Notes under the pieces: model-generated
Told to the model about the DNA's origin: nothing
The model's database searches: none
The model's input: only the letters and a program-made list of their open reading frames with translations
Translations under genes and position numbers: made by a program
Assembly (NCBI GenBank): GCA_904063045.1
Contig: CAJFCJ010000016.1
Location: 744,001-808,000 of the forward strand
DNA from: Dimorphilus gyrociliatus
Lineage: Eukaryota; Animalia; Annelida
DNA: 64,000 bases
Direction: 5' to 3'
Shown here: positions 3,893 through 64,000 of the stretch, piece by piece
How positions within the stretch are numbered: the first letter of the stretch is position 1
Layout of the letters: each line of letters opens with the position of its first letter

Positions 3893-4161
3893 AAATGATG
3901 AATTTGTGTACAAGTTTGCCTTGTAAGAATAATGGAAAATGTACAATGGACTTTAATAATAAAAACTTTATCTGCGCATGTCCAATTACTTATTCGGGTG
4001 AAAAGTGTCAAAATCCTACTAAATGTTATAATCATTTATGTAAGAATAAAGGACGTTGTTTATTATTAGGTAAACGAGATAGGAAGAGAAACATTTGCAT
4101 TTCCTATTGTACAATTATACTGTATATAGATAAATATATAGACGTAATCCTCTATAAGTGT

Positions 4162-4211
<50 letters not shown>

Positions 4212-5661
4212 TGTATATATACTGTATATATACTGTATGAAATTGAAAATTTAAGCCAAGTTAATTACAGGAGAACATGCCGCCTGTGCTTGTACACCCG
4301 ATTATTATGGAAATATGTGTCAATTTAGAAAGACTATTGGACAGGGGAGAAAATGCGACCAACATCCTTGTAGTAATCACGGTGTTTGTGTAGGTATATC
4401 CTCGTCTGTTGGGTTTAGGTTAGTAACCTTCAAATACTGTTTTACCTTTTCTTTTTTCTTTCCTCCCCTCCCCGCTACTTTTACAAATCCCTTGCTTTCA
4501 CTTAGATGTATATGCGCACCGGAATTTCTAGGCGCCTTCTGTCAAATTGCAGTCGATAAATGTTGGTTGAAACCGTGCAAGAACGGTGGCCACTGTTATG
4601 CTGTTGATCAGAAATACGTATGTTATTGTTTACCACAATTTAGCGGTGAAAATTGCGAAGGTTTGTTACTGTTTTTTTTCATCTTGAAAGTAAATAATAA
4701 TAATAAGAATAATAAGGAAAAAATGAATGTTTTTCACCATTTTCTGACGTTTTCTAAGTAAAACAAAGTAAATATCTTAACTTGTGTTAAAGAGAGTAGA
4801 AATTAATGAAAAACCTGTTTTTATTTACTTTTACTTAAAATGTTTTAATAATAAGAATTTAAACAAAAAGATAATAAATTATTCCATCTGTTTATTGCAA
4901 GTAATTTTCTCAAAATTATCAATTTCTTTGTAATACGAAATTTAATTATATCTCTTATAATGGATTTACAATCAAATGTAATTGTTATTTCATTTATTGT
5001 ATCTTGTATCTACTACTTTTGCTTAATGATATTCCTTACGAGTTTTCTTGAACATTTTATAAGTTTTATATAAATAGATAAAAGACACTGTCAAATCATC
5101 TAGATCTTTTACATGTAGTATAATGAGAAAGTTAACAGCTAATAATCATAGTGCAATGTTGACAAAAAAGGGAATTTTGACGACTTTAAGCATAATTCCC
5201 TAGTGCATAAAAATTACAAACACCATACCTCTATAATTATCTATGTAAAGTAGGATTTTTAGAAAGAGAGAGACAGATAATTGAAATGCTACATAATTAA
5301 TTGTTTTATCTTTTTTTGTATTATATAGTTTTGTTTTTCTAGTGGAAAAAGTGTTTTCTTTTTTAAAATTTCGATAGTAGACTCCTTTCCTCTCCTTTCC
5401 CATCCCCCTGTCAATATTTGATTACTTTGGCTATTCAACTATATATCTTTATATATATATATATAAATTTATATATATATATATATTCTTTGTTATTAAA
5501 CTAGTAGGAAATATCTTAATTAATAATTGATTATTAAACGTTTGATGTTGATAAAAATAATAAGCATAGCATATAAAAAATGTTTAATAACTTTTTACCG
5601 TAAAATTTCTTTCTTCTGTCTTTTTCTTTATATACCTTAAGTAATAAGTAAATTAGACTTT

Positions 5662-5697
<36 letters not shown>

Positions 5698-6684
5698 CTT
5701 AATAGTAGTAGTAATAATATTATAATAATATTAATAGTTAGATATACAAATGATTTTTCCCCAACCTTCTTTTACTTCTCATATTCGACCATTTTTCATC
5801 GGAGGAGAACGATGAAAAAGGGTTGAATTTAGGAAAGTTTTTCTCTATATGAAACATCAAGAGTTGTGGGAGGGAATCATGGTAAAGATAGATAAAGGAA
5901 AGGCGGATATATCTAGTGTTTATGATCAATAATAATTATATGTTTTCCTCTTTCTTTTCAGATTTTGGAAGTGGAAAACTGTTTGTTGTTAAAAGCACAA
6001 GTAAGGAATTAGAGTATTATTTTCAACGATTGTTTACATACATATATATGTAAACATATTGTTTACATAGACAAATTATAGTTTTGTTCTAAAATTACAG
6101 TTATTTTTACCATCTATAAAACAATAATTAGATTAATATACTAATGAATAATATCTACTAAATATTCAGTATGTATGTTTACTTTTCAATTGATCTATTA
6201 TATATAATAGATCTTATAAGTTAATTTCTTTATATAAGAACCTCCAACATATACAATTCATTTATCTGTGTAAGTTTATTAAATTGTCCTTTATTTACAT
6301 ATTTAATTCTTCCATTTATTCCTTTTTCTATTCCTTCCCTAAACTGTACATACATATATATAGTATTTATTCATAATGCTTTTAAATGAAGAAAGATTGC
6401 ACTACTTATTCCCCTTCTCAAGTTTCTTTTATTTAATATTTTATTAGCTATTATTAAATTAATAATTATGAGTTTTCTAATTTGATTAATAAGCTTTTAA
6501 TATGTTAAATCCCAAATGATTATTCTTAATCGAATAGGCTTTGTTTTCCTCTGTACTAAAAAAAGAAATCAGAAGCTTGAGCAAATGAAGTAGAAAGCGA
6601 AAAATGGTGTTTGTATGTTTGTACAGTATGTATGTATTTATATTTATTCCTGTGTGTGCGTATGTGTGTGTTAGCGTGTACGTA

Positions 6685-6720
<36 letters not shown>

Positions 6721-13423: not shown

Positions 13424-16400
13424 TCATCGTAGTTCTCGTCTAACCTCTTCAAGCAGCCTCCTAATGCCATCTATCGTTTTAATTAAACAATTCTAAAGTT
13501 TTAATAGAAAAATACTTACCAGTTGCTGTCAAAGTAAGTTTCAAATCAGATTGTTGGCCACCTTTCCAGCATGGAAATAACCCGCAGCTGACTTTGTACA
13601 TTTCCCCTGTTAATCGATTTTTTTCGAAGAATTAATAGAGTGTTTGTCCGAGAATTTTATTTCTTTATATTTTCTCATCATAAAAGAAGAGTAGCTAAGT
13701 TAATGTTTACTCTATGTAATACGATAGAATCTACATTGTCCAGCCTGTTGGTAGACTCGTGACAACGATGCCAATTGAGCTTGTTTTTAAATAGAATTAA
13801 GCTAGTTGTATTTTATCATGGATTTCTCATTCTTCCATCCTATTCCTAGAAATCTGCTCCCTCATACGCAATACAAATTATGTCTAGCTGAATAGGCCCA
13901 TTAGAATAGACGTCACTAATTCCTTTAGTTTTCTTTTATAAAAGGGTTGAAACATGATAACATCAGTAATCATTTTTCTATCTTTTTATTATTAGCCTAG
14001 TGAAAATCGTCTAAATTGTCTTTTTTCCTTATTATATGAGTAATAAATAGCCTTTTAGTTTTGAATACTTTTTAGTAGTAGCCCAACTGTTCATTGGAGC
14101 TGGAAGCGTTAACTTTTCTCATTCTCTCTCTCTCTCTCTCAGAATAGACTTTTATCAAAATGAACATGTTTATATCTTTAAAAATGATATTAAAATTTGA
14201 TTATGGAATTAATTATGGCATTTTTACATTATATATATTATATATATCATATACAGTATATTATGTTCCCTTACACGCATTCGTACATACACTTGCCTAT
14301 CCTCTCTCTATACTTTAACGATAAAAAATTGGTATAATTTATAATAAAAATATAATATTAATAATAATAACGTCTCACATCCCTCACATGCTTAAACTTT
14401 CAAGGTTGCAAGAGCCTCTTTTAGAATATTTGTAGAATAGGCAATTTTTTTCTTTTTTTTATATTAACTCAGAAGAACGTAAAAACGTTTTATTATAGAT
14501 ATATAATAGAAAAAAGACCTTGGTCTGTTGAATAATACTGAATAAATCAATGTATACAGAAAAAAATAATCATCGATCTTAAATTAAAAATTATCTATAG
14601 GCCTATATATCTAGCATATTTCTTTTATATACATAAATATAAACTCACGCACATGTACACAAAATAACACCACCTTTTACGAAATATACTATAGTTGTTA
14701 TCCTATTTAAACTATTTCTACAAAGTAAACAAGAAAGACATTAATATATTTAATAAAAGTTCTTTTTCTTATTTCAAAAGCAACGAATAAGATTGGAAAT
14801 AGATGAAACGATTCAGGGAAGGATAATATTAATAAATTATAGGGAAATGTTAACAGGAAAAACATGAAATTTGGTTTTTTTTGTGGTGGAATCAAGTGAT
14901 GCGAATAATGCAGTTTCGTCTTCCTTTTCTAATGATAATCAATTTTTGTATTAAAAACCCTGACAATTATCAAGATCTAAAAAGGATTTTATACAAAAAA
15001 CTAATTATATTACTCTGTCAAATATACAATTATTTATTTTTCAACTTGTGTAATTTTCTTCTACTAAACATTTTATATAAATATAAAAATAAAGAACAAA
15101 TAGACATAAATACTACTATGATTACTTTAAACAAATGATATACCAGCACACTTATACTTGTATATATTTAATGTATAAATTCTAGAGGTTTTCTTGATAA
15201 AACAATAGAAGTGAACTTGTACGTCCACCTTCCTATTTGGACTATAAATAGAAAAGAATCTATCACTTTCTTAGTTATTATAATAGCTTAACTTACTCTA
15301 TTGATTGATACACATATAAAGCTGAATAACGAGTCGAAATAGACGTAGAATCACACACACATATATATATATATATATGCAGTGTATATATTCTACCTCT
15401 TTCCATATTCAAAGAGAGCCAAAATCAATTGAAAACGAATTTATTCACTTTTTCTCTTCCGAAAAGATAAATGCTTTGATCCAGGGTTACTAATGCCTGG
15501 TAGAAAAAAATCTCTCTTTCTCTCTCTCTCTCTCTCTATCTGTCTTCCAATCTAACTATCTGTCTATCTAACTACCTGTCCGTCCCTCTAAGTCTTTATA
15601 AATTCTTCAATTAATTAGATTCATTTTGTTAATAAATAAAAATAAGCTTTATATAATTATTGATTAGAATTTAAGGAATTTAAAATTATTCCAAGTGAAA
15701 GAAAGAAAGATTGATAGATAAATAGATATATAGATATATAGACAAACAGGCAGGGGCGGATAGACAGAATGAATAAGAAAAAAAGTAAAAAAAATCGGTG
15801 CAATCGTATTTTTTACGTTGTATAATTACAGCAATAAAAATTTGTCAAATTTGCAGCAGATTTCTTGACATTTCACTTGGAATGATTCATTTTTTTATAT
15901 ATTTTCTTGGAAAGTTTCTATTCATTTTAAATATGAAGGAAATTATAGAGAATTAAACAGGAATAAATTCGTTACAATTGGTAAGACAAAGAAAAATTAT
16001 AGTAGTAATTCGTAATTACATATAACAACATGTATATATCCATATAGTTATTTATATAAATATACTTATACATTAAAGCTATATAGTTAATTATTTAGAC
16101 CTTAAGGTTTCTTTTCTATATAATCAATTTAAATAAGTCAATTTAAAACGATTTAAGCAGGTAGTAACAAATATTGGGAGACTAGATATGATAGGGGTAA
16201 TAGTATACACTAGTACCAACCACCAATCAAATACCTACACACTCTTGCATATTTTTGATTTTCAACATTATGATTATTCACCATAGTCTTGTATGTTTCC
16301 ATATAATGCCAACTTAGCATTTATGTATTTTTTGCATGCTAGTTAGGAATTTATTCCTCTATTTCTTATAATAAGAAATAATTAATGGAAATCCTAGAAA

Positions 16401-19400
16401 GATATTACTATAGTATGTATATGCTATATTCATCTAAATACTGTATATTCATACAATATCTTTAATGAAAAGGTGAAGGTCAAGTTTTTCTATTCTAATA
16501 GAAAATATTTTTAAGTAAAAGGGAATGCTTATACGGATTATTTTAATCATAAAATCGGGATTAATGTCGCCATTATACATCTTAACACGATAATACTCTT
16601 TAACAGAGGAATATTTTATGATACTGGGTGTAGTATTCATTCGGCTGTTTGTGCCTTTGAGCTAAACTATTAATATCTTAAATGTATATATGTTTGTGTA
16701 TATATATATGTAAATATATAATGCATATACTGTATATATACAGTGGTCAAAGACATTTTTCATTCCTAATCCTGTTTTTTTAAGGCTATCTCATGCTCTT
16801 TTTTATCGTATCAATTAGTCAAGAAGTATGTTCCCATAAGACGATATTACCTTTGATGAATGTTCCAAATCTATGATTGCTAAATACTCTAAAATTGATA
16901 TAGTTAAAATCTGGAGACATTGAAAAACACCAGAATCACTTTCAAAGATATGGAAAATTTATTATTAAAAGAGTCATTTCCCCAAACTCTTCTATTTAAA
17001 GAGGATATTTCTAATGAAAGTAACAGTAGATTTATTCTTAATTGGTATTACAATTTCTTATCTTATATAGAGGAAAATCGTCAGAAACAGACACCTCAAT
17101 TGGTGTTGAACGGGTTATCATCTAGAGTTTTATAGAGTCTAATATTTTCCAAAATATTTTTACTATTAGAAAAAAAGTGCATAAGAGCGGTAATTATCCC
17201 TTCTTAAAGTCGAAGTGACGCCGCTTCCAAATATAGATTTATTAAAAGAGCTTCACCTTCAAGTGGGATAGCGTTCTTCACCATAAAACCAAAAGTATTT
17301 TAAAGATTTACTATCTTACTATTCTGTATTTCACCTTGGCCATCTCCATCTTCAATTGAAAATTCCCTAGTTTATGCTTTAAAATATAGTTTATAATAGT
17401 CCACAATTTATTAGAAAAAGAAGACTTTTTGTCTACTATCTAGCTAAATTCTTTAGATAAGAAAGAAAGGGCGCTGATTACCTTTGAAAGTGACCTCTAA
17501 AAAAAGGACATTATAGATATGAGAAATTTCTTTATCCCACATAAATACTGTATATAAACATATATACTGGATTACTTTATGATATTCGAGTTTTTCGCCT
17601 TTCTTTAACCCATTTCCTTTCTGCTAAAAGATATTTTTGTTCGCTTCTCTTTCCACGTAACGCCACCTCAAAATATCTTTCAGCATTGAAACGCATTTCG
17701 GATAACACAGTTGAATAGGCTTATAATACCCATATATACACTATATATATATACATAATCTTTTTATTAGATATATTAGGGGAAGTCAGGACAGGACGAG
17801 GATAAACAAAGGTGCTTGTTCTGTCTCCTCTCATCCCCTCTTTATTATTTTTAACTTATTAAGAATTCTATCCCTTTCCCCTCAATATTCTTCCTACCTA
17901 CAAACTCTTTTAATTTTCTTTCATTGTGAAATGTATAATTCATAAACTCTAAGTATATTTGAGAAGAAAAGAGGCTGATAATTTCCAAGGAATATTATTT
18001 ACTTATATGCCTCTTGTTTCATTTGGTTCGGTTTTATCAGTCTTTATATAGAAAATATAGTTGATATAATAATAAAACCAATTTGACTTACTGTAATTCT
18101 CGTTCAACAAGCCATAAATAATTGGATTCGCAAAACTGGCAACGAATATCAAGACCTCGCTCACGACTGAGAAAGTCATATGAGCTTTAACCAGAGAGTT
18201 GTTCACATCACTTGCGTGATACCAGTGAAAGACTTCAACCGCATTAGTAATCTCGTAGGGAGCATGACAAAAGATAAATAGGATGACTATTGCAAGTACA
18301 GTTTTCCTCATTCTGGCCGATGTTATTCTATTTGATTTTCTTGAAATATGTAAAATTCGCCGCATTACCATGGTATAACAGGCGACGATAACTACAACTG
18401 GCAAGCCAAGAATAAACATTAAATCCAGTATAGTAACAGCTTGTAAAGTAGAAGGAGGCATTTCCAAAGAGCATTTAAATGACGAGTTAGTCTCCTTTAA
18501 AGTAACTCTAAAGTAATAGAAATAAAATCTTCCACCCTAATAAAGACTGTTGACAGAATAATCAAAACGACAAAATAACTTAAAGAATTAATTCTTATTC
18601 ATCTTTTTACAATAGTATTAGTCCAAGTCTTATTAAACAGAGTCTTTAGTTATCTGTCAATTTGAATGTTAGTTTTGTAGTTATTACCATTATTAATAGC
18701 TTTATTAGAATATTTTGTTAATATAAATATATACAGGTACTGTATATTTTAATTGTACAATCGCACTTATTACAAGCTTCTTCACCTTTCTTTCTCTTCC
18801 TTTTACAATTAATAGTTATGTATACACACGTTCTGCTCAATAATGGATTAACGGGTCAAAGAAGGGGATTAATAGTCTATAACTTTCTTCTGATCAATAA
18901 AGAATTGAGTTTTATTGTACAAGTGTAAATAAACTATTTTAGAAATGTCTGTTTTAGAGACTTGCCGACTAATTAAAATTCAATAGAATAGATAACACTT
19001 TATAGTAAAATTCTGAGAAATTATGAACGTTAACCCTCAAATAAAATGAATCACATGTATAAATTAATTAAATCATGCTTCAAATGTCTAGAAACTAAAT
19101 TATTAGTTTACATGTTTATATAGATTTTTTATATATACTGTATATAAACATTAGTGCACTTTGCCTTTATGATTTTTACCTTTTTACTGGTTAATTATAT
19201 TTTATGTTTTTAAACAATTATTTCTCTATGCTAACTCCCTCTGTCTGTCTGTCTGTCTGTCTATCTCTCCCTCTCTCCTTCTCCTTCGGATCCGTAGTCT
19301 AAATAAATGTATATGAAATATATTGATTTCTCCAATAATTAGTATTTTACTTATTACATAGAACAGCTATGATAATGAGAAAGGCAGTTAGATAAAAAAA

Positions 19401-21906: not shown

Positions 21907-24900
21907 TTTCTTCCTTTCATTCTCTTTTCTTCTTTACATATACTCTATTTACAAAACAACTGCAGTAAAGCTTATCAAGCTTGTTTTATCCGTATATTTA
22001 TTCTCTGCATAAAGTTCTGACAGAATCAACGAATGTCTTAAAACGGGATCAATTTTCTTTAAGTTTTTGTTCTGGTTTTTGTGAGTGTACGCTAGCTAAA
22101 CGCTGATTATAGCAATATACTAATGTATACTGAAAAGGAACTTTTGAAAGAGATATATAATTCAACAAAAATATTTAAATAATTAAAGAATATACATTAT
22201 TTTATATACTGTACATACAGTATAATATGTATAGTATACATCGTCGGAAAGAGTATAATGCGAAGAGGTAGTACTAAGCCTAATTAACAGTATTTTAAGA
22301 AGACTTTCAACTGTTTAAAAAAGAATGTAAAACATAAAAATGACTTTTGTGAGTTTGTAAAGAAACGTCAACAAGCATATTTTTACAATTTGTTCTATTT
22401 TATTTTATTTCCTATTCTTTTTCTTCTCTAGTTTTCTTAGATTGAACTAGATCTTAATGGAAAAATGACAAACATAAAAGACGTTAAATAATATTGAAAA
22501 AATGCCTAAAGGCTCTTTGGTATTTCTATTATATAATATACTGTACACACACATATATGCTGTATACTGTATATACAGTATTTATACTATGAAAATGTTT
22601 TTCACCTTAATGTTTCTTCGTCTCCATCTCTTGAATTCTCTTTTATGCTTACAGAGTAGCCGAGAAGAGACGACTATAAACTGTATAACAGGATAAATCT
22701 GCTCCTCTTTTTCTAAAAGATACTATCAGATTACATTTACTTTCAAGATAAGGCATAAAATAAAAGTAGGCGAATAAAATCGTTTACGTGAGGCTTTAAA
22801 TTTGGTTAAAAACAAAACTAATACTGTTCAAGTGACTATTTTACATGCATAAGCAGATATATGTATATATATAGTTCGTTAAGGGTACTTCAATATGAAA
22901 AATACCAGTTTAACCTTTAAAGTGAGATAGGTAAAAATAGATCTTTTTTCATAGTGTAATAGAATATTTATTATGAAGTAAACGGGACGTAATAGGAGGA
23001 AAATATCAATTTCATCGTATTTTAAGGTAAAAATTTGTCAAGTCAAGTATATTTGATGAAATAAATTAAGAAAATGGAAAAAATTTCTCCATGCAATAAC
23101 AACAACAAAATCTCTGTCATTTCATATGAATTCTTCTAACAGGACTGACTGATGGTGTTTACTCTACTTATGTAGAACCTTCTTACGTTAGATTATCACT
23201 GAAAGGAAGCCACTAAAAGTAGCAATAGCACAGTTTGACTCCCGTGTTAAACTCGAGACTACACTTTTTTCGCCAGATCATAAACAAAAATATTTTTAAA
23301 GGCTAATGGACCTCGAAAGAATTTACAATATGAACCAGAACAAGACCTAATAATTACCATAGTTCTACATAAAAACGAGAAGGAAACTTACTTCCGTACA
23401 AAAGAATTTTATTCTTTTCTTTCTATATTTTTTTCACAACAACTTCCACGACTGAACAAAAACTATAATAATATCTGATCACAGTTTTCTACTATTAATA
23501 TCCTGAGAATTTCTACGAAAATACAATAATAAATTTCATTTCGTAAATTATAAAATCAATTTGATAACGGGAAGAAAGAAGAAAAATATACAGAAGAGGT
23601 GGGATAGATGAAAAAAGGAAGGATTTTAACGGTATGATTAGTATAAGACAGGTGATAAACTGCTAGAAAGAAAGAAAGGAGGAATGTCCTTTACATATTC
23701 TTTTATAGATTATTTCCCTTTTTTTTTAAAAGAAAAATCAATTAGAGAAACATGGAAGGATGACTTTTTAACTCTTTTCCGGCTCCAGTAAAGTTCCTTT
23801 TATAATTTTTCCTTCTCATTTAATGCTTTCTTATTTTGTGATTTAATATAATTTACTTCTACTAGATACACTGAATATATATTGTATATATAGAACTTTT
23901 TCTAGATAGAGTGTATATTAATAGGCATATGCTGGTATATAAATATAGGGACATGTACATCGGAACGGAGAGAGATAGAATAGAAAGTATATTTGTTTTG
24001 GCACAAATGAAAACATAGAAATTAGTATATTCCAGGGGTATAAAAGATCAAAGGAAAGAGACTGTTATTTCAGATGAAATTGTTACTATTATAAAAATTA
24101 AAGACTTACGAATTGTCACCCTTTTCCAAGCCATTAGTTTTTTATTCTTTTTTTTTTTACTTTTTTCTTTGATTTTACTAAAAAGGGACTTTTCGAGAAT
24201 ATGAAATGCAAAATAAACACCAAGAATGGGTATATGTCTATAATATATAACAGACGAACAGTAGAATATATGTATATATACCCCCGCTCATCTTGTTTTA
24301 TTACAAAGCGGTATTTACTCGGTAAAGATACTTAGGAAAGACAAATTAGACAGGAAGATCAATCAGATTATTCTATCTTTTATTTAATTTCAAAGCACTT
24401 AAAATATACATAACAACTCTAAACGATTGTTACATTCTTTATTTTACGATCAGACAACTATCCAAACATATTTGAAGGCTATTGTCTGGGGAAAAACTCG
24501 AGACGTCGTCTCTCAAAGTAAAAAGATCGACGGGACGTAATTGATTACTAGATATTGTTCATTCATTTTGAATTAGATATCTCGTTCCGAACCTAAATTA
24601 ATTATATAAGTCTTTAAATCGTTTCATTTAATTAAATAGCATGAAATTTCATCGAAATGACGTCATCATTTGACATGATAATATTCTATTTATGATTTAT
24701 ATATATATATATGAATGTACTATAAACAGTCTATACAATACAGTTAATAAAGAATCGCTGTGTCACGCATTTTTGACATAAAGCTATTTATAGAGAGCGT
24801 TTCTCTTTTAAATACTTCATAGCAGAAATTGTTAATAAAGTGCATATACTGAACCAAATCGACTATGTAACAAAATTGATTGTTCTTCTATAATATATAG

Positions 24901-32273: not shown

Positions 32274-32307
<34 letters not shown>

Positions 32308-32359
32308 TTATATATATATATATATATATATATACATAGACAGATAGACTTGATGTATA

Positions 32360-40083: not shown

Positions 40084-41582
40084 GTGTGTATACATCTATA
40101 CATAGACCTATCGTACACCGTATACACTGTATGTTGCCAATATGTTGATCTTGATCAAACTATATCCCCCTTGTACTAACAATTCTCTCTTATTTCTTTT
40201 AATATAAAATGTATCAATCAGTTAGGTGTATTAATAACAATATGTATATTCAGTATGTATTTCCTATAGATCTATCTGACTTTCTAAACGTGTATAAATA
40301 TATGAATATACTGTATATATTTATATATAATGAACTACGTAAATTATCTTTATACATGTATATTACATAATATAGAAAAAAAAGAGAATATAAAAAGCAT
40401 AGCTTTAGTGCATATACAAGTATATAAGTCTATTTTCGTCGAAGATAACACCCATTGTATAGGCCTATAGTTGTGGGCGTGTTGTTCGAAGATAAAGAGG
40501 AAGAAATACCGGCGTCGAAAACGGAACAGAAATACGTCTACTTTTTTTTTCTGATCGATATATAGCTTTACTAGACACGCATTTTCCTATTAATAAATAC
40601 ATCTATATACTTTTTATAGTCGTCGTTATCATTGTTTTTATAAATTTTTATACATTTCTATGTATTTTAATATACAGTCTACAGAGAATATGTATATATT
40701 AATATATAATAGATGTATTAATTAATTATTTTACACTAAAATAATTAGTTAAAGCGTTAACCACATAGATCTCTTTATAAACGGAACGATAGAGATAATA
40801 GTCATAGTAATTTTAAGGGCAAACTATCAAAGGTTAACAAGTTTTTATATCAAACTATATTCTCGTATCCTTTAAGGAATAAATACTTTGATAAAGCAAA
40901 ACACAAGAAACTGATTAAGGAGAAGAAACAGGGAACAAGGGATAAATTTAGAGAAATAGATTGAAAACTTTTTACTTTTTGACTAAAATAAGAAAATATT
41001 ATGTGACTATTATAGCCGGAGGTTACTTTTTGTTAGATTAGTCTATTAAACTGGAAAAATTACATAGTCCTTTTGTGGTAAAGGAGGTCGAGTTTCTTTG
41101 ATCTACTTTTATAAAAGTGCAAGAGCAATTAGTAAGGAATAAATGATAGACGAAAATTTGTTCTACTCTTTATTCTTTATTTTCGTCTCCACCCTCTCCA
41201 CCTCTCTCTATCCTTATTTTTCCAATATCCTTCACTCTTCTTTCAACCTCAATTAAATCTATTCTATTCATAGACTTCTTAAATAATATGCATAACGTTG
41301 AAAATATTTTATAATAAGAATAAAAAGAAAGTAAAAATTTCTCTTTAGTAATGAATAAACGGGATAATAGATCATGCATTAATCGTTTTATCTTGCTAAA
41401 ATATGATTCATATCCTGAGGTCAGGGAAAGGTTCCGGTTCTCTAACTACAATTTGTATCATAAGCTAATGACCAGACAGCGTAAAATACATGCTGAAAGG
41501 TGAAAATATAATCTAGAGGCTCTAAACCAGCTTAAAGAGATGAGTAATCCTTTAAAAGAGAGAGAGATAGAGAGAGAGATAA

Positions 41583-42137: not shown

Positions 42138-43559
42138 AAAAGAAATAAGTGACACCATAGATATTTGTAAACAGAGATTAAAAGAACGAAGGGAAAGACA
42201 ATTAACGATCATACCCTTAATTTTATGTTAAAATTATAAAAGATTAGGTGGTTAATTGATGAGCACTCTTTTTGATACTAAAAACTAGGTTCGAAATGTT
42301 TCAAGTGGTAATTGTTTGAATGAAACTCACCGGTACGATATCCGCCCTTAACAACCACATTTGCAGTATTGCGGAAGCCCGTCCACTTCACTCCGCTTAA
42401 TTAAAAAAATTAAAGCATAAATGTTCACATTTCATTTAATTCCACAGTGATTAACCTACTTTTTTCCTCTATTTTTTCCTTTCATTCAACACTCCCATCC
42501 TCCACTTCTTCTCGCTCTACCTCCCCTCACCTTCTTATGCCTAATAAGAAAGTGTCAGAAGTAAACGCCAAGTAAAGGTGTATTATTGAAATTAAGGAGA
42601 AGAGAAATAACGCTAGAATCACAGATGTTAAAATCAAAGAAAAATAACAAAAAGGAAAAATAAAAGAGAAATTTTACAAGAGTCAAATAAAAACAACAAA
42701 AAAGTATAGAAGTGGGAAAGCAGCACTCGCTCAAAAGGGAAAAAAACTGCAAGGACTAATTTATAGGGCTGCAGGTGCATGTTTGGTACACTTGGCTTTG
42801 AAATATTCAAAAGAAGAAATGACCGGCAAAGAAGAGATCCGTTGCAGTTGATTGATGCAGGAGAATAAATTGCGTTAGACATAAGGCCTTGGAGACAAAA
42901 AAATTGACGAATAATGAATTAAATGAATATTTATTCGGCATCGACAAAATTGCCTAGTCACGCTTTACAAACAAGACCTCCGACTTTTCATCGCTTGTAC
43001 ACATATACACTTATATATCTATATGTGTATAAATATTAATATATAAACATATATATATATATATATTTATTTATTTATTTATTTATTAGTCCCATTATCA
43101 ATCAAGTTTTTTCACTGTATACAGTAAACATTTGCCAAGCGTCTGTAATTATCCGCAAAGATTATTATTACTATAATCAATCACCGTTGAGTTCATATGT
43201 TTTTTCATTAACCCTGCTTTTTTCAAGACAAGCTAAGGTATAGAGCTGATTTTATTCCTACATTCTTCTCTTTTCCTTTCAACCTTTTACTTTTAAGAAG
43301 AGTTCAATCAATGAATGGATTAGGTAGTTGTGAGCAGCTTTGTCGCAAATATATACTTATATATCAGTATATACTTTTTCATTTATCGCTGAAAGCGGGA
43401 AAAACTTTACAGGATTTTCTCCCTACTAATTACACCTTTTTACCCGATAAACTAAACGGGTGTAAACTTTTTACTGCAAAGTACCCAATAATCGTTGACC
43501 AAAAGAATTGAATCTATATACTGTATAAATGAGAAAGAAAGAGAAAGAGGGGGAGGGAG

Positions 43560-50549: not shown

Positions 50550-52688
50550 ATGGTTTACATGAGTCGTTTTGTGCTCTTGTCGCTTTTATGCATAGCTTCC
50601 ACTCATTGTAAACTTTACGTAGCGTTTGGTGGAAACGGATTTATAGGCACAGCCTGCATATCTAAATTAATTGATTCAGATCACAAAATTGTGATTGTTA
50701 GCAGAGGAAACTGGTATTTTGACTCTGACAATATTATAAAGCCTAATGTAAGGCAAATTAAATGTAATAGAAGAGAGGAATTATCAAGGTTAATAGCAAA
50801 TTTATCAATATATTAGTTACTAATTGCTAACCGATTTAGATGCGAAGAATTAATGAAATTTATAGATGAAACGGAAAAGATTGACGCTGTCTTAGATTTC
50901 TCTGGAATATCCGACTTTCATTCTGCTCAAGTTTTGAAGCACTTTAATAGAACAAATGTCGAATTTCACCTACATATAAGTACCGATTCTCTATATGATA
51001 TTAGTAAACTAAAAGAAAGTGACAGATACTCAAAAGAATCAGATTCAATTAGACCCAAGAATGAAAAAGAAAAACAGAAAATTGCAGCTTTTAATGATGC
51101 CGACTGGATGTATAAAAATCCCGTTTATCTACCAGATTTTAAAGGTTGAAAGTTCAATTAGTTTATCACCTGGCTTAATCTTTAAACAAGTTCTACAGAA
51201 TGTATAACAATAATAATAACAATAACAACAACTTTTATTTTTCAGTTGAATTGACTGGAGATGACTTAGATTCCTACGGTGATCTTAAATTAGCTGCCGA
51301 AGAGGTTATTGTAAAATCATTCGACGAAGGCAACGCTCCTAACTATATATTTCTAAGACTTCCAGCTGTTGTTGGTAGTAGAGATACCACTTATAGATGG
51401 TGGCTGTATCAACTATGGATAAGAATGTCTCAACATATACCAGAAAATCCTGTACCTTTACCAAAAGCCATTAAAGTGAGTTTTACTTTAAATCTAATTT
51501 AGGACCCTGTTTGATAATTTATTTACATGATTAATGAGAGTATTTTATTTTGAATATTTTGTATGAACGTCATTATTGAAAGGCATAGCCTTATTCTCTC
51601 TTTGAAACTTTTGAACAGTTTTGCAATGTATGAGTTGTTGAAATGTTTTCCAATTCTTAGATCATCTACGTTTGTATATGGATGTTTACCTACCCTTCTT
51701 TTCAAGTAGAACCGAAGGTTTTCAATTGGATTTAGGTCAGTATTCTGGGCTGGCCAGTCTCGAGAGTAGTTTATTTTCTTCTACCTTAAATATTTTAAGA
51801 TGCTCTTAGACGTATGTCAGGTAGTTCCATCTTACATTAGAACATTGTACCTTTTACAGGAATTTCTTGATATTTAATATCAATGTTCAATTGATTGATT
51901 GATGTACTTGTAGGATAGACGCCTTCTGACGAACTTTGTTGCTACATAGCCTCTTAAAGTATCCTTTCTTAGTATACTCTTACAGGTGGAAAATGATCTA
52001 ACTGGTCCAAAGTCAGATGCTGCTAAGATTAGACATAATAATCTTTCATCCCACTTACTCAATTGTGCCATATTTCTTGAACTCTTTCCAAATCCTTTGG
52101 CCCCCACTCCCAGATATTTTCAACATCTCTGCAATTTTATTCAGTTATAGCCCTTCTTATATATATAGTTGCAGTTGCAGTATACCAATTACTAATTGTT
52201 TGCCTCCCAAAAAACAGGATAGACCCATGAGTGTTGTTTACGTTGAAGATGTTGCTACTGTAGTTGAGAACGTTCTAGCTAACCCGAGAGCCTACAACAA
52301 GCCTTATAATTTAGCCATTGAGGAGACGCCAACTCTGACTGAATTCTTAAAAGAAATAGAAGCTAATTTAGGCGTTCGTAAAGCTAATTACAAAGTGGTT
52401 GAGGAAGGCATCTACGCATATCCAGATGTTAGAAGAGGACCTGTAGATATATCTAGGGCAAAAGAAGAATTGCAGTTTAAGCCAACATCCCTCAAAGAGG
52501 TCGTAAGGAGAACAATCAAATATTACGAAGATGCTATGAGTAAACTACCGAAAACAAGAGATGAGTTTCTTAAAATTTTAATTAAAGAAGTATTCAATAA
52601 TCAAAAGGAGAAGTTTATTGATAAAGTCGGAGCTTTATACAATATCAATTTGGATCAACTCAAAGTGAATGTTAAAGAAGAATTATAG
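50550..52688 (+). CDS. Extended short-chain dehydrogenase / NAD-dependent epimerase-dehydratase family protein with signal peptide and C-terminal KEEL, 414 aa
   Basis: Exons 50550-50788, 50840-51144, 51246-51475, 52218-52688 are phase-consistent. GGNGFIG Rossmann motif, HISTDSLY, SYGDLK (YxxxK), LRLPAVVG, VYVEDVA, YNLA. Starts MVYMSRFVLLSLLCIASTHC and ends NVKEEL*. Confidence 0.9.
51520..52160 (-). mobile_element. Degenerate, internally deleted Tc1 transposase inside intron 3 of the SDR gene
   Basis: Minus strand gives an N-terminal HTH (LNKIAEMLKIS...RIWKEFKKYG), a second HTH (LSKWDERLL...FVRRRL) and the C-terminal DWPAQNTDLNPIENLRFYLKRRV at about 51758-51690. Most of the DDE core is missing. 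Confidence 0.8.
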
Positions 52689-53204: not shown

Positions 53205-54450
53205 ATGGAAAAATATCCAACCGTTCCAGAATTTGACCATCAAACTTCAGGGGAAAATGAGATTTGGAAGGAAATTGATATAATTACTAAACGCCCCCGT
53301 ACCCCTAACTATCCGTATACAGATTTAAACGACAAGATGATTGCCAATATTCAAAAAGTAAGCTTTGTAGTTAAACTAGAGTAAGGAGTTTTTTTTGCAT
53401 GTTTGTTAGTATAGAAATCCAGATCTGCACCATTTTTTATGCCACCAAAATTGGAGAACCTGGAAAAACCAGAGCCTGGAAAAGACGTAAGAACCTTATC
53501 TAGATATATGTATATACTGTATATATTAATATCTATTGTACATTGCACTAGTCTTACTACTTTTAATTAAGTTGGTAAAAGAACCAAAACCTGCATAATA
53601 TATATGTTAATTATAGATCTAGTTAATTCCTTTTTGAGTATTAGTAATAGTTAAATAGTTAAAATAGACGCTAAAGAAGGAAAATCTCTCTGTTTCAATC
53701 TCTTTTCTATCATTGTTGAAAATAAAATGAATTTGATTTATAATCTTTTTTTTTTTTAAAAAAAAACAATAAACAGAAGCAAAATCCATCTTGCCTTTTT
53801 AACAAAGAACTTGATGAGAATCTTATAACAAGAGAAACGGCCTATAGACAGAAGCGCTTCGCCAAACCACATCATACGAATTCTGTAAACAGGAATCTCG
53901 TTAGGATTGAAACTACAGCACCGTTTTGTTTTATAAAAGAGCAAAAGTCAAAGGATTACGATAATTGCCGAGGCTTAGCCTCTGTAAAATGGGGACCAAA
54001 CAGAACTGGTGAAGCGACTAGAAGTCATACTTTTGGTGAGGATGTAGAAAGGTATACAATGATTGACATGCAGAGGAGAAACCCAACAAACTATTCAGGT
54101 CGGGTTGTAATGGATTGCGGTAGACCGGGAGATGGTTATTATGCTGAAAAGTTTCCCTGTAAGTTTTTGTAATTAACTTTTTTCTTTTTTTCTCTCTCTC
54201 TCTGGCTCTCGCTTTTTGTTTTATTAGATTTTCTTTTTCAGCAAGAACAACTTGGTTTGGTTCTAGCGTTCCATTAAATAGGCATTTTGTTCTGCCATCG
54301 GTTTACCCAAAGACGGCTGCAGAGTATGACAAGGATCATATGAATGAAAGAATCTTTAGAGAGAGGTCATCGGAGAGCTGGCCTCATATGACCGAATATA
54401 CAGACAGATACCTGTTGTATGGTAGGACCGGATGTCCATTATCAGGATAA
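53205..54450 (+). CDS. Uncharacterised 271-aa protein, absent from the ORF track; possibly ciliary or sperm-associated
   Basis: Exons 53205-53357, 53415-53486, 53777-54158, 54242-54450, all GT-AG, phase-consistent and stop-free (MEKYPTVPEF...DCGRPGDGYYAEKFPSRTTWFGS...WPHMTEYTDRY...SG*). The ciliary guess rests only on the X-box and composition. Confidence 0.85.
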
Positions 54451-55011
54451 ATCTCTCTCATAGTTGTAAGAAAGCGGAGGAAATTATTTATGATCATTGT
54501 TTAATAATACAATACAATTCAATATCCGACTCCCATTCTTTTTCTATCGCGTAAACAAAAGATGGCGAGACGGTTAGACGCCACTAACGTCCTCTGTCAT
54601 CAAAAAAACATAAATGCAGACGGTTTAATTGCATTATATGTTTACCGAGTTGCAACTTTTTAAGTCAGTGTAAATAAATCAAAGAGTTTAGGAACAAACA
54701 AGAAGTCATTAGAGGACAGACGTTGTATGTAGTTTGAAGAATTAACGAAACAGATTTCTCGGTAGTAAATAGATATATTGTAAATAAAAGTATATATCGA
54801 AACCATAGAAACCTAATAATACATCAATTGCCCAACTTATTTGTAAATTCATTTGTACTTGCTTTGTTTTTTTATTAAATCTATAGCCGATTTTTTCTCT
54901 TTTATATTAATATATAACGTAAATTTTTATTTGAACACAAGGACTTTTGTTGTAACACGTTTTTTCCCCCCTCTGCAATTCACAATTACTGCAATTTTGT
55001 TTTTATATATA

Positions 55012-55042
<31 letters not shown>

Positions 55043-57561: not shown

Positions 57562-60500
57562 CACACATACATGCATAATCACTAACTCTATCTTTCCTTT
57601 TCTTCGTTATATAAGAAAAAAATTCAATAAAATTGGATAGAAAAGAGAAAAACAGTAATAATTGTTTCGAAAACGTCTACGGTAAATAGCCTTAAGTAAA
57701 TTCACACCAAACAACTGCTATAGTGGAAAACCTATAAAATTTGAGAAATTGCACCATGTGAAAAAGAAAAATAGAAGAAATATACTGTATACACCTCACC
57801 TACGTTTTTTTCCATTCTTTTTTTCCACTTCCCTTCTGTTACCCTTACACCCTCCTCCCGCCCTCCTCTCCTATTCCCTACTTTTTCAATTGCCTCTTCT
57901 CTCTTCCCTTCCTTTGGGGTTTATAATGTTATACAAAAAATTCAATATATTATATATACAATGTAAATATAGATTATTATATGAAATTTTACTTTTAAAT
58001 CATGTATATGCATGCATAAATTAATTTAATTATTCAAGAAATAAAAGAAAACACGTATACAGTATATGTGATTATTGTTATTATACATGTTATTAGATAC
58101 ATTATTTGTTTGCAAAAGATATATATGAAATGTTTATAAATTAGAATTTCATTCATAAAATAACAGAGTGGAAAGAGAAAAAAAAACAATTGTCCTAATT
58201 TTTATTTATACAAGGTTGAATGAACTAATTTTCAGTCAATAACCTGTTTTAGAAAGAAGATGAATGATAGAATGGAACAGGATATTCTAAGATCTTTTTC
58301 TTACTCTTTATGCCAATATACTGTATATATACTGGATATATGGCTATCTTTTATACTTTTCACGAATTTTTGCAGGCAATTCATACAAAATACAGTATTT
58401 TTCTTTACTTCAATCAGTCTTTTATTGCGTCCACCGAGTGTAGCAATTAACGATGTAAAAATCCGTAAAAATCCATTTTGATTAAAAAATCCCTATTGGT
58501 TAGATTGTTATTTAGTCGGAAAGTTCCTTTATATACTATTTAATAAACTAATTTTTTTCTTATTAATCTTATTCAAATGAAAATTGGGAGAAAACTAGGA
58601 TAAAAATATAAAATGAATAGAAAAAAGTGTGTTTTCTTTTTAAAAACTGCAGAAAAAATTCGTCTAAAAGCAGGTTAATGTTATCATTTAATTAAATTTA
58701 TACTGCTTGTAAATTCTTAACGACATTGTACAGAAGTTAATAACTAACAACGTTCCAGTCTTTTTTTTTTTTTTGCATTTTAGGAAAAAGTCAGGAGAAT
58801 GGAAAGAGAAAGAGCTTTAGAGTTTGTGTTTTGTATGTGGCTGTGTGTTGTGTTTGTGTGTGTGTGAGAGAGAGGGAGAGAGAGGGAAAGAGATGAAAAA
58901 AGATATATAAACCGTGTTGTAAGGAATTGAAGAAGATTAAGAAGTATGTAGAAGATTACAGCGCATAAAATAGAAAAAGAAGAAAGATAAATCAGTTTAA
59001 AAGTCTTTTAGGTCTTGTTTTGTTTTTCAAAAGAAAGATTAGTAAATAAATAGTAAGGAAAAGGTGGAAATTTCAATCATTAAGAAACTAATCGCATTTA
59101 TTTTAATCTAAAGATGTAAATGCAGTAACAAAGAAGGCAAACAAAGTTAATTTGATACCTGAATAAATGAATAACTTAATATTTAAACAACATTTTAAAT
59201 TGGACAAATCTAAATAAAAAGTCGTTCTATTATAATTATTGTTATTATTACTATGATATACAATATGTTAAATATACCCTACAACAACTTAGGTTCAAAG
59301 AACGAAATAGTCTTTGAATTATTATTAACTTGTCAGAAATTCTTTCTTTTCTTCATCTACCGTCCATTTCGCCTATCTCGTCTACCCCTCTCCCCAATAC
59401 TCATCTCTTAATCGGTCCAGCTATCCATCTCTCTTGTATGTAGTAGGTCTATTATAAGTGAGACATAAAGATAAAATATTGCTCTACTTATAAATAAATA
59501 AATATAGCATAAGAGTTAATTCTTAAAACTTTTATAAACAAGTTTTGTACTGCTTAAGATGAATCTCTCTCTTATAATTATTCATTAGCGTACTCTATTT
59601 TCTGTCTTGTATACACAATGTGTACTAAAGATAAAGTATACAATCATAAATGCTACATGTAGACAGTTCATCCTTTTATCTTTCTTAATTATAATATTAG
59701 TTTAAAATTATTGTTCTTTAAACAGTAAATATAAAAAACAAGGGTATTTTCTATTATTGGCCTAATAATGAACTCTATTCAGTTTATATACAATAACTTA
59801 TCCGCATTATAATAAACCAAAAAGGTTAAATACTTAAGGAATATTAGCTTATAAAAGGTTTTTTAGATAGTTTATTATACAGCATTTACTGAATATATAA
59901 TTTATACTATATATCGAATGAAATATACTGCAATATGCTTATCTGGAAATGGAACGAATCGGGTGAGAAAGTGTCAAGCTTGCTAAAGAGTCTAACGACA
60001 AACAATCCATACCAAGCAGTAGTTTTAAGCGTAATAGACGCCTCTCACATTCCAATTGGAATTAATTTCTTTGAAAAGTCGGTGAATAAAGTTCTCTTTT
60101 TTTTTTAAACTGCAATCTCTTATTTGCTTTTTACTAGAAAAATAAATAAGTCAATAAACATAACTGAGGTTAAACAAGAAATACTAACACCTTTTTTGTA
60201 TAAGGAAAACAAGTAAGCAAACAAACAAACAAACAAACAAACACATAACATACGTACTTAAAAACGAATGTTTCTATATTTGATATTTATTAATAAAAGT
60301 GTTTTGTTACTGTTCCTGTGGTTGTTCTCTTTTAACGAATCTATTAGACGGTTTTCGTATATGTCATATATGCTTCCATACTACTAATTCTATTCGCAAT
60401 GCCCTTTTTAAAACTATAGCAAAAGCCGTCTCTACTCTATTGACGTCTCCCGGAAAAGCTGCAAGTTTCGTTAAGATTCGATAACATATAACAACCGAGC

Positions 60501-61598: not shown

Positions 61599-61634
61599 AT
61601 AGATGGCGCTCGTAGAGTTCAGAGTGCCATCTAT
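61599..61634. promoter_or_regulatory. Inverted pair of CTCF-like motifs upstream of the MYRIP-like gene
   Basis: ATAGATGGCGCTC, a 10-nt spacer, then GAGTGCCATCTAT; about 200-235 bp before ATG 61836. Confidence 0.5.
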
Positions 61635-61835
61635 AAGTGTCCCTCACGATAACTTTACGTTTAGAGAGCGAATTTGCTTTCGCTGTTAATAACATATTTC
61701 ATGGAAGTTGGCTTTTAGAACAAAGCGAAAAGCGTTTAAAATAACGCCGAAAGGTGATTTATAACGAAACATTCAAGAAAAACAAAGAAAACTAGAAATT
61801 AAACTTGAATATTGGAAGTAGGAAACTTTTTCCAA

Positions 61836-62538
61836 ATGGGTAAATCTCATAACATCAATAAACTGGATTTGAGTGGAATTTCGGAAAAGGAATCAGAAGC
61901 TATTTTAAGAGTAATACAAAGGGATTTCGAATTAAGAGAAGCTGAACAGTCTAGAATAGGGTAAACTGTTATTTTTTATACTAATATTTTTTTTATACTG
62001 GTCTATAGGACTACGTTTTCTCTATTGAACTATTAGAAACATTAATATGGGGAAGGATACATAGATGATATTAGTAATAATTGAATATATTAGAATATAT
62101 AGCAAAAAAAGAGAGTTATGTACAATGAATAAATAGTACCTTGACAATTAAAGGTGATATTAGTTATTGATATTATTACCAAGTATAACGTATTTAGTTA
62201 AATAAATCAATAAAATAATACTTTTTTTATTTATCATTGAAAAGATAAAGAAATATATAGAAAAAAAGAAATTTCTATTTCTTATCTTGCTTTTTCAATG
62301 AACATATTCAATTAATCTTTAATATACTCTACATACTTTAAATATTATTATATCCCTTATTAGCATAATTTATGAATAATTAACTCTTTAATTAATTCAT
62401 TTTTTCTTTTATTTATTTGCTACGGTGTAATGTTTAATTGTGCAATCTATACTACTATATTTATATCTGTAATATTCAATTGATACAGATAGTAGTAATA
62501 AGGGTATAGGTTTGTTATAAGTACAAGTATACACATAC

Positions 62539-62576
<38 letters not shown>

Positions 62577-63926
62577 CGTGTGAAAAGAGTCTATCAACAT
62601 TATGTCTGATAATAAGCCCGTACAAGATCCATCTAATACTGAAAAATGTTATATATAGTATATTAACACTATATAAAAAGAAACGATTGTAGAGAGGGGC
62701 AGAGAGAGTAAGAGTTAAAAAAATGGTTCAGAGAATACTGTTTTTAAAGCCAACTTTACCATATGACGGCTCATATACTGGTTCAAGTTTTATATATACT
62801 GTATATACTGTATATAGCATACAGGAAAAAGTCATATATTAAATATAATATCGTCAAAGCCCATTCTGTAAACTATTTAAGCTATATTACATTGGCCTAT
62901 TTTCACAATTGGTATCTATTTGAGTTGTTTATTAACCTCTTCTAAATGAAAAAAAAATGTCTATGTAATTAATGTTAATAGGGAAATGAACATGGCATAT
63001 GTTACTTTACACATAGTTTGTGAAACTATTTTGGTTTATAGGCCTATCTCTTTATAATTGACAATACTATTTCGCTTTTTATATCTTTATACTTTATAGT
63101 ATGAAAAAAGTTAAGTTTGAAAAAAAAAATTGAATAAAAATTCTTTTATATCAAAGAAAGAAAAAAAATGAAAAGAAAAAGAAACTAGTATTTTCTTTAG
63201 ATTTTTTTCTTTCTTTTTTTAACTCCCTCTCTTTCTCTCTCTTCTGTTTTCTTACTCTGGAAAGTATTATGACTCTTTCTGTTATTTTCCTTTTACTATT
63301 AATTGTTTATTCTATGAATGTTGTTAAAAATAAAAATGTATACAGTGACAGATGGATGTAAAATTATCCAATATATACGTATATTGAGTATAAAGCTTCT
63401 GACGTAATATCATATTTAATACAATATTAAATGGGAATGGGAGGACATGTGTATTTGTGTGGGTGGGGTAAATTGGCTGATATAGATTCGATTTATAAAA
63501 AGGAAACATGCAAACATTAACAAGTATTGAATAGTTTATAGATTTTCTCTTTTTAAACATAGACAAAAAGAAGTTGAAATTACAAAAGAAAGTTCAAGAG
63601 CGGAAATCTTAGCTCAACAACCAAACTTTAACGAAAATTGCTGTATGAAATGCTGTAAAAAGCTAGTATTATTTATTTAATAAATTAATATATACTGTAT
63701 ATAATAATAATAATATTAATAATAATTTCTCTCTATTCAAAAACAAAATGCAGGTTTATTATTCTCTTTAATCCTAAAGTTAAATGCTCTTCCTGCGAAT
63801 TCAATTATTGTAAAAGTTGTTGCATTTTCATTAAAAAGAAATCTGCATACATATGCAAAACTTGTGATAATGACAAACAGTTAAGTGCCTCCACCTGTTC
63901 GTGGTTTTACGACGGTGTTAAAAAGA
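61836..63926 (+). CDS. MYRIP: MYRIP/melanophilin-like (Slac2) Rab27 effector, N-terminal Rab-binding domain with zinc finger; continues beyond the window
   Basis: Exons 61836-61960, 63563-63661 (GC donor), 63754-63926 give MGKSHNINKLDLSGISEKESEAILRVIQRDFELREAEQSRI...CCMKCCKKFIILFNPKVKCSSCEFNYCKSCC...ICKTC...SWFYDGVK, matching the Slp-homology domain (KLDLS, RDF.LR, CCxxCC, WFY). Orthology versus MLPH is not resolved. Confidence 0.85.
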
Positions 63927-64000
63927 AGTAAGTTTTGTACTAAACTTTTATAAAACATGCTATATACAGTATAATTATTCGTCTTTAATAGATTTAGAAG

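Follow-up and report, generated by a model that had tools for sequence, protein, structure and literature searches.

Heptamers of the form TAC(A/T)GTA are present in genome-wide excess in Dimorphilus gyrociliatus and are very probably excision footprints of Tc1/mariner-superfamily elements of the Sleeping Beauty (SB) type, as judged from the sequence. The non-coding DNA would most likely record ~12,000 past jumps, with only a few hundred such elements present in the genome today. An insertion-excision record of this kind had been proposed in the initial annotation of the window (the whole stretch of 64,000 nucleotides analysed); to this proposal are now added triplet specificity, a centre restricted to A or T, ATATATAT-type flanks, mobile CAG...CTG elements in TA tracts, and the lack of a strand bias or a common repeat, with the support for excision being indirect. 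The heptamer matches exactly the canonical footprint of SB, 5'-TACAGTA-3' or 5'-TACTGTA-3' (PMC6943129), which is one reason for this assignment.

Excess and triplet specificity

Genome-wide counts were made in the 77.9-Mb assembly with the reversed motif as the control. The heptamer occurs 24,999 times compared with 12,506 in the control, the 11-mer TATAC(A/T)GTATA 7,166 times compared with 150, and the 13-mer ATATACWGTATAT 4,511 times compared with 33. The closer the flanks come to ATATATAT, the target reported for SB (PMC8934666), the higher the enrichment: ~2-fold for the 7-mer, 14-fold for the 9-mer, 21-48-fold for the 11-mer, and 137-fold for the 13-mer. CAG and CTG make up 7,166 of the 8,192 TATA-SWS-TATA sites and in the TATA-NNN-TATA context are ~21-fold more frequent than the six other triplets of the same composition, a specificity that argues for excision. 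The initial annotation had named, as a possible refutation, an enrichment of CAG/CTG that does not exceed that of other two-GC triplets; this genome-wide difference answers it. The central base is almost always A or T, with 7,166 A/T-centred 11-mers against 268 of the C/G-centred form TATACSGTATA (27:1), as the overhang model described below predicts. CAG/CTG ranks first among the 64 triplets, and no other insert of 1-9 nt between TATA flanks is as frequent, not even the single-transition variant TG/CA (55 versus 44). Outside the TA-phase classes, the most frequent one-GC triplet is CAA/TTG, the single-transition decay product (12 versus 3-7 for the others), which also points to eroding footprints.

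The window contains 54 heptamers (32 TACTGTA and 22 TACAGTA) and 21 11-mers (16 TATACTGTATA and 5 TATACAGTATA), where ~51 and 21 had been counted by hand; all 18 of the 11-mer coordinates listed at that time are right, and the zero-order expectation of ~15 heptamers and <1 11-mer per window is reproduced. Among all 64 TATA-NNN-TATA triplets in the window, CTG (16) and CAG (5) are followed by TTG (4). The six other TA-SWS-TA triplets of the same composition have a mean of 7.2 occurrences each in the window, so that ~14 heptamers are expected and ~40 of the 54 are in excess. Two of the 54, at 38193 and 38727, are junctions of a resident MITE and not scars. The density of 11-mers in the window is 3.6 times the genome average. 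In the window together with 200 kb of contig C1, 55 11-mers are observed with 0.3-4.8 expected and 143 heptamers with 36-110 expected, depending on the Markov order (0-5). The centre of the 11-mers in the window is skewed toward CTG (p = 0.027), and the central base on C1 shows weak regional heterogeneity (p ~0.01). Both count against an excision origin because random resolution alone does not predict them; neither the heterogeneity nor the skew is replicated in a further 550 kb.

Resident elements and genomic setting

The initial annotation had described a MITE with CAG/CTG ends, which is located in a TA tract of the window (Table 1) and is an occupied site of the kind expected to leave TAC(A/T)GTA upon excision. 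The family has ~12 copies, six of them 100% identical, with matches that extend into the TA-repeat flanks and left boundaries that vary, and it appears to have been recently mobile. The terminal repeat occurs 28 times genome-wide, two of these adjoining DDE_3 matches; at C26 and C94 it is placed 300-650 bp upstream of a DDE_3 transposase match on the same strand. A second CAG-ended family is represented by a solo terminal sequence that has 14 copies genome-wide and none in the control, and no partner end for it was found within the window. Two Tc1 relics had also been claimed, one of which is recovered as a DDE_3 match above the cut-off, truncated and lacking recognisable ends, whereas the other gives only a weak match. 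At least 150 DDE_3 matches occur genome-wide, and the residence of matching CAG-ended elements and DDE_3 loci in the same genome favors excision footprints. Counting against this origin, the best-scoring transposase copies retrieved end in TA-TAGGGGG and not CAG, and the CAG-ended families found are small (28 and 14 termini) relative to ~12,000 scars. The D. gyrociliatus genome paper assigns 0.85% of the assembly to Mariner-class transposons and 0.08% to MITEs with matching terminal repeats (PMC7854359), a description that suits both the MITE of the window and the DDE_3 loci. Excision footprints were not found mentioned in the main text or the available supplements of that paper. The putative scars outnumber the resident Mariner-class elements and MITEs by ~25:1 or more.

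Table 1. Positions of the motif and of mobile-element sequences in the window
Feature	Position	Strand	Remarks
TACTGTA heptamers, first half	4118, 4209, 4220, 4231, 7351, 9156, 16439, 16728, 17546, 18089, 18738, 19136, 22207, 22539, 22565, 25761		
TACTGTA heptamers, second half	28642, 30444, 33500, 38727, 40309, 43519, 45923, 52256, 53515, 55010, 56966, 57783, 58319, 62797, 62806, 63693		
TACAGTA heptamers	6622, 9097, 11396, 13221, 13381, 14252, 20989, 21757, 22216, 22574, 25804, 29730, 33542, 33584, 38164, 38193, 43120, 46895, 55116, 58058, 58391, 63965		
Span of all 54 heptamers	4118..63971	none	
Putative scar, 11-mer	4116..4126		CTG centre
Tandem trio of putative scars	4207..4237		period 11, after (TA)18; most likely one scar multiplied by slippage
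Putative scar, 11-mer	14250..14260		CAG centre
Putative scar, 11-mer	16726..16736		CTG; 5 bp upstream of solo CAG-type element end
Solo terminal sequence, second CAG-ended repeat family	16741..16764	+	begins CAGTGGTC
Putative scar, 11-mer	19134..19144		CTG
Putative scar pair, 9 bp apart	22563..22580		CTG then CAG; first is an 11-mer
Putative scar, 11-mer	25759..25769		CTG
Putative scar, 11-mer	29728..29738		CAG
Tc1-type transposase relic, C-terminal part of DDE_3	32578..32784	-	PF13358, E = 2.4e-7, 31.1 bits (cut-off 28.6)
Putative scar, 11-mer	33540..33550		CAG
Putative scar, heptamer	38164..38170		CAG; same TA tract as MITE, 29 bp upstream
MITE	38195-38731		ends CAGTAC...GTACTG; TA duplication 38193-38194 and 38732-38733; within TA tract
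Putative scar, 11-mer	40307..40317		CTG
Putative scar, 11-mer	43517..43527		CTG
Possible second Tc1-type transposase relic, weak	51526..51780	-	DDE_3, E = 0.023, 15 bits, below cut-off
Putative scar, 11-mer	53513..53523		CTG; within low-scoring exon-like ORF, probably not a real exon
Putative scar, 11-mer	55008..55018		CTG, then (TA)14
Putative scar, 11-mer	57781..57791		CTG
Putative scar, 11-mer	58056..58066		CAG
Putative scar, 11-mer	58317..58327		CTG
Two overlapping putative 11-mer scars, 9 bp apart	62795..62814		both CTG
Putative scar, 11-mer	63691..63701		CTG
Putative scar, 11-mer	63963..63973		CAG

The flanks of the sites are symmetric, with a TA periodicity that fades gradually to ~10 nt in the flank matrix. 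Removal of the 5-nt scar from the consensus ATA-TACWGTA-TAT rebuilds the SB target ATATATAT, again favoring excision, and ~14-18% of ATATATAT-type tracts in the sample carry a site. The earlier description of the sites as often inside (TA)n applies to the 13 of 54 window heptamers having a flank of four or more TA units, but most flanks are only 2-4 units long. The sites had been called nearly all non-coding, and exon-like ORFs indeed hold 3 of the 54 heptamers (~10 expected, p = 0.007) and one of the 21 11-mers; many sites are distant from ORFs or between divergent genes. With respect to the closest coding strand, the sites show no orientation bias in a trained coding map (14 same and 20 opposite; 34 and 21, respectively, by raw ORFs). 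Flanks of different sites are unrelated and share no common repeat, and no paralogous alignment extends over any site in the 264 kb formed by the window and 200 kb of C1. Sites are often paired 7-13 bp apart, and the centres of neighbouring sites are independent (14 same and 11 different). The depletion from ORFs, the lack of strand bias, the unrelated flanks, and the independent centres are the behavior of neutral scars.

Excision model and competing explanations

In the proposed mechanism, elements ending in CAG...CTG would insert at TA, with a preference for the TA in the middle of ATATATAT, and the target TA would be duplicated. To excise the element, the transposase would cut the non-transferred strand 3 nt inside either end, each flank being left with TA and a 3-nt CAG overhang. 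The overhangs would anneal with a central A:A mismatch and be sealed by end-joining, with the mismatch resolved to A or T, or alternatively one overhang would be retained and filled in. The site would end up 5 nt longer, as TACAGTA or TACTGTA. Such scars would be neutral and last until eroded by mutation while element number stays low, and this combination would account for ~12,000 scars beside a few hundred elements. Both the derivation of every scar from a real insertion-excision event and the repair route are what we infer from these data.

A palindromic DNA-binding motif, in which half-sites TATAC and GTATA around one A/T are recognised by a protein dimer and maintained through selection, would be compatible with the near-perfect palindrome, the sharp C-W-G core, and the thousands of copies in non-coding DNA near genes. 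It is nevertheless unlikely, as the flank information fades with the TA periodicity and has no motif edge, the sites occur within TA runs and microsatellites and often as close pairs, and such sites are present in ~14-18% of the ATATATAT-type tracts. The sites show no preference for divergent (promoter-side) intergenic regions in the ORF-based map, and it would have to be a coincidence that the motif is exactly a known transposon scar and lies beside mobile elements that match it.

Mutation of TA microsatellites or repair of fragile TA tracts, with no participation of transposons, is a very unlikely source of the motif. A 3-nt interruption shifts the TA phase and therefore cannot arise from (TA)n by substitution. 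The association of the sites with TA runs, the local slippage amplification (4207-4237 and C1), and the likewise enriched AATT interruption are in keeping with such a by-product, but CAG/CTG is commoner than the single-transition variant, is the only one enriched of the eight S-W-S triplets, and has a C/G-centred counterpart that is 27-fold rarer. The by-product also requires C and G to be made from pure TA, and we know of no slippage or hairpin process that does so.

The heptamers could also be occupied-site junctions, marking where copies of an abundant and very AT-rich MITE or dispersed repeat terminate, with ends reading CAGTATA..., given that the window MITE junctions read TACAGTA and TACTGTA, that its repeat starts with CAGTA, and that a second CAG-type solo end is present. 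This identity was rejected and is highly improbable. The sequence is TA-rich and symmetric on the two sides of the motif, neither of which is element-like, flanks of different sites are unrelated and lack paralogous alignments, and the base after TATACAGT is A in 75 of 92 cases. The TIR scan of 264 kb yields one true TIR pair, the window MITE, and the left-end-then-right-end order is not in excess over the reverse (5 versus 6). A sense-strand RNA element, such as a PUF/Pumilio-type UGUAUAUA site (contained in TACTGTATATA) or a 3' UTR microRNA seed match, would suit the CTG skew in the window but is barely tenable and was rejected because orientation to the coding strand is random, the flanks are symmetric, and many sites are remote from ORFs or between divergent genes.

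Known systems and genome compaction

As putative excision footprints, the worm sites resemble those of SB in having the same 7 bp, composed of the terminal 3 bp of a CAG...CTG element between duplicated TAs (PMC6943129), in the A/T centre, and in flanks that rebuild the SB-preferred ATATATAT (PMC8934666). The SB footprints come from experimental excision at single donor sites, whereas the worm sites form a natural genome-wide k-mer excess of ~12,000 that is known from sequence alone. The Tc1 and Tc3 elements of Caenorhabditis elegans belong to the same superfamily, likewise target TA and have CAGT-type ends, and their scars consist of terminal nucleotides flanked by TAs. Tc1 and Tc3 cut with a 2-nt stagger and leave scars based on CA/TG. 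CATG is not one of the ten most frequent 4-nt inserts between TATA flanks, and the signature here is therefore of the 3-nt type, unlike Tc1/Tc3. A putative 3-nt stagger of the worm transposase has indirect support in the length of the scar, 3 nt, and in the 2-nt-type scar not being enriched. Internal eliminated sequences of Paramecium are TA-bounded with a C/T-A-G end consensus from Tc1/mariner-like ends, and their removal from the somatic nucleus is precise, so that one TA is all that stays behind. The TA boundaries and Tc1/mariner-like ends are points of likeness (for context see PMC9808624), but in the worm a 5-nt scar stays and there is no sign of programmed elimination.

The initial annotation had suggested that excision could be a way for a compact genome to lose transposons. 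The scars show turnover and not net loss, each adding 5 bp. A further proposal, that excision without reintegration is a main route by which Tc1-type elements and MITEs have been cleared from gene-rich DNA in this lineage, is doubtful; if it holds, the ~12,000 scars can be counted as traces of a transposon purge that accompanied compaction of the genome. The agent of such clearance may have been a natural transposase that strongly prefers ATATATAT and integrates poorly, resembling in this the engineered SB K248 variants (PMC6943129, PMC8934666). Still less probable is an origin of the scars as junctions left when elements restricted to the germline are removed from the soma in a programmed way.

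Most excision footprints are known from experiments on single loci. If the sites are such footprints, ~12,000 canonical scars, ~1 per 6 kb, form a clean excess that can be counted in the genome of an animal in its natural state, beside a few hundred elements. The scars would provide a direct measure of historical cut-and-paste turnover, since they decay at the neutral rate, as well as a map of target-site use, with scars in ~14-18% of the ATATATAT-type tracts sampled, and would allow a test of whether excision helped to lower the transposon load of a compacted genome. In annotation the motif should not be taken for a regulatory element, and the TA microsatellites of D. gyrociliatus should be expected to bear a characteristic 5-nt interruption. 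Within the TA tracts, slippage multiplies sites locally; examples are the array of period 11 at 4207-4237 and one of period 9 on C1. Another palindromic interruption, AATT, is also enriched there.

Abundance and specificity of the TAC(A/T)GTA sites

The heptamer occurs in the window as 32 copies of TACTGTA and 22 copies of TACAGTA, and a recount found every coordinate listed for such sites in the initial annotation to be correct. When all 64 triplets are compared between TATA flanks in the window, CTG (16) and CAG (5) come first, followed by TTG (4). The 11-mer TATAC(A/T)GTATA is observed 55 times in a 264-kb sample (the window with C1:1-200,000 of the same assembly) compared with 0.3-4.8 expected under Markov models of orders 0 to 5, and among inserts 1-9 nt long with TATA on either side in this sample CAG/CTG is the most over-represented, the TA repeat itself aside, outnumbering the single-transition variant TG/CA 55 to 44.

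Genome-wide counts cover the whole Dimorphilus gyrociliatus assembly of 77,897,245 bases in 349 contigs (W, A or T; S, C or G). The specificity of the pattern becomes clearer with length, with 24,999 matches to the 7-mer TACWGTA compared with 12,506 to the reversed pattern, 7,166 compared with 150 for the 11-mer TATACWGTATA, and 4,511 compared with 33 for the 13-mer ATATACWGTATAT. All eight SWS triplets between TATA flanks together give 8,192 matches, of which 7,166 are CWG, a 21-fold excess per triplet over the six others that upholds the preference for CAG/CTG on which the initial annotation relied. The 9-mer class ATA-SWS-TAT has 15,555 matches, with CWG in 82 of the first 100 matches listed (∼14-fold per triplet). 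A central A or T is 27-fold commoner than a central C or G, for which TATACSGTATA has 268 matches. The 7-mer and 9-mer counts each give an excess of ∼12,000 sites genome-wide, ∼1 per 6 kb, and the density of 11-mers in the window is 3.6 times the genome average.

Flanks, neighbors, and the excision-footprint reading

The wider sequences around the window sites are mutually unrelated, and the immediate flanks are symmetric with a TA periodicity that fades within ∼10 nt. The consensus is ATA-TACWGTA-TAT, and removal of the 5-nt scar leaves ATATATAT, the target centered on TA that is preferred by the Sleeping Beauty transposase (PMC8934666). Most sites have 2-4 TA units per side, with a minority held in long microsatellites, and among ATATATAT-type tracts ∼18% of those in the window and 14% of those in the C1 sample carry a scar. 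Exon-like ORFs in the window are depleted of sites (3 of 54 compared with ∼10 expected).

TACAGTA and TACTGTA match the canonical Sleeping Beauty excision footprint (PMC6943129). The sites are most likely scars of excised Tc1-type elements with CAG...CTG ends and of their MITEs. Such elements would integrate into short TA runs at the central TA, and excision would leave TA and a 3-nt CAG overhang on each flank. Pairing of the overhangs via an A:A mismatch followed by joining would yield TACAGTA or TACTGTA, 5 nt longer than the original site, and scars would pile up while element numbers stay low, accumulating because they are neutral. What is directly observed is the sequence, specificity, and flanks of the sites, together with the mobile elements and their target; from these we infer that excision took place and that the cut was of 3 nt. 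A relative excess of CAA/TTG, which a transition produces from CAG/CTG, fits slow mutational decay of scars. A self-BLAST of the window and C1:1-200,000, used as a paralogue test for the 5-nt insertion, gave no alignment over any heptamer, and no nested scar was seen in six Tc1 loci and the MITE copies.

The symmetric motif could also be read as a palindromic protein-binding site, which we regard as improbable. A strand-specific RNA motif was rejected because the trained coding map shows no coding-strand bias (14 sites on the same strand as the nearest coding sequence and 20 opposite; against raw ORFs, 34 and 21).

Neighboring sites often lie within 7-13 bp of each other, with no dependence between their central bases (alike in 14 pairs, different in 11), indicating separate events and not the copying of one unit, short slippage arrays such as the period-11 array in the window excepted. 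Two three-unit tandem arrays of scars illustrate that a scar can evidently start a compound microsatellite through slippage. There is also a weak hint of a regional bias in the central base. In C1:0-905,000 central A and T are clustered by region (binned permutation p 0.007-0.014), with one run of 13 like centers (p = 0.01), and the window 11-mers are skewed toward CTG (16 compared with 5 CAG, p = 0.027). A global runs test on C1 is not significant, and the clustering was not replicated in a further 550 kb (C1:905-1,452 kb). The pattern shows no relation to the strand of the nearest coding sequence and, if real, could reflect strand-biased repair.

Features of the window and of other contigs of the assembly
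Feature	Location	Strand	Remarks
MITE with CAG/CTG ends	window 38195-38731		537 bp
MITE copy	C54:85-627		95% identity
MITE copy	C108:14,780-15,321		95% identity
Transposase relic	window 32578-32784	-	clear DDE_3
Transposase relic	window 51526-51780	-	weak candidate only
Scar tandem array	window 4207-4237		period 11, three units
Scar tandem array	C1:1,087,166-1,087,196		period 9, three units
AATT interruption	window 32276-32338		example
Class C GPCR genes, tandem cluster (L008-L010)	C1:75,950-95,232	+	ANF_receptor and NCD3G domains

Resident elements and candidate sources

The MITE with CAG/CTG ends recognized in the initial annotation is present as described, reading TA-CAGTAC...GTACTG-TA within a TA tract of the window that also holds a scar heptamer, 29 bp upstream of the element. 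The MITE family has ∼12 copies, six of which are 100% identical, with matches that extend into TA-repeat flanks and differ in their left boundaries, so the family was mobile very recently and targets TA repeats. The MITE terminal repeat occurs 28 times genome-wide, and on contigs C26 (near 816,380) and C94 (near 71,723) two solo terminal repeats are placed 300-650 bp upstream of matches to DDE_3, the Tc1-type transposase domain, on the same strand. In the Sleeping Beauty transposase, residues H187, P247, and K248 govern ATATATAT preference and integration. A second terminal repeat family, starting CAGTGG, numbers 14 copies and includes one that lies 5 bp from the scar at 16726. The CAG-ended families recognized here are all small, and the 264-kb sample holds 1 intact CAG-ended element compared with 55 11-mer scars. 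Two MITE copies, on the small contigs C54 and C108, have equal identity and the same terminal-repeat mismatches; one contig may be a duplicate or haplotig of the other.

The two Tc1 relics claimed for the window fared differently in a profile search followed by Pfam, in which the relic at 32578-32784 was clearly identified and the one at 51526-51780 remained weak. A tblastn search for transposase relics with six transposase copies as queries gave no match. The assembly as a whole yields at least 150 DDE_3 matches, many with open frames of ∼345 amino acids. The best-scoring copies examined, L021 (contig C255) and L025 (C192), belong to a Tc1-like family whose terminal inverted repeats are 187 bp long and end TA-TAGGGGG, with 98.8% identity between copies, and they lie on small contigs of low G+C. 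A further locus, L024 (C270), has a G+C content of just 13.9%, and the contigs of all three loci may be a microsporidian contaminant and not worm DNA. The L021/L025 family was set aside as a source of the scars, given that its ends are not CAG and its contigs are possibly contaminant.

Turnover and genomic setting

The scars show turnover and not net transposon loss, each adding 5 bp, and the proposal in the initial annotation that excision could have helped to rid the genome of transposons finds no support in the present tests. The D. gyrociliatus genome paper assigns 3,793,607 bp (4.87%) of the assembly to transposons, with 0.85% in Mariner-class elements and 0.08% in MITEs, and does not mention the footprints (PMC7854359). 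A non-exhaustive literature search, including that paper and its supplements, found no account of footprints like these in excess across a natural genome.

The window, C16:744,001-808,000 of the assembly, has a G+C content of 29% with long ORFs scarce, and its genes are of ordinary animal kinds, comprising rhodopsin-type receptors in several exons, an LRR protein, and a GT92 glycosyltransferase. Scans of the whole window for tRNA and Rfam families gave no match. Elsewhere in the assembly, class C GPCR genes form a tandem cluster on C1.

TA tracts are also interrupted by a second palindrome, TATA-AATT-TATA, often TATATAAATTTATATA, at ∼10 sites in 264 kb compared with <1 expected. It is equivalent to (TA)n with two symmetric substitutions, and a genome-wide count using TATAWWWWTATA was overwhelmed by plain TA repeats. 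This interruption may have arisen by hairpin-templated mutation or may represent a different type of scar.
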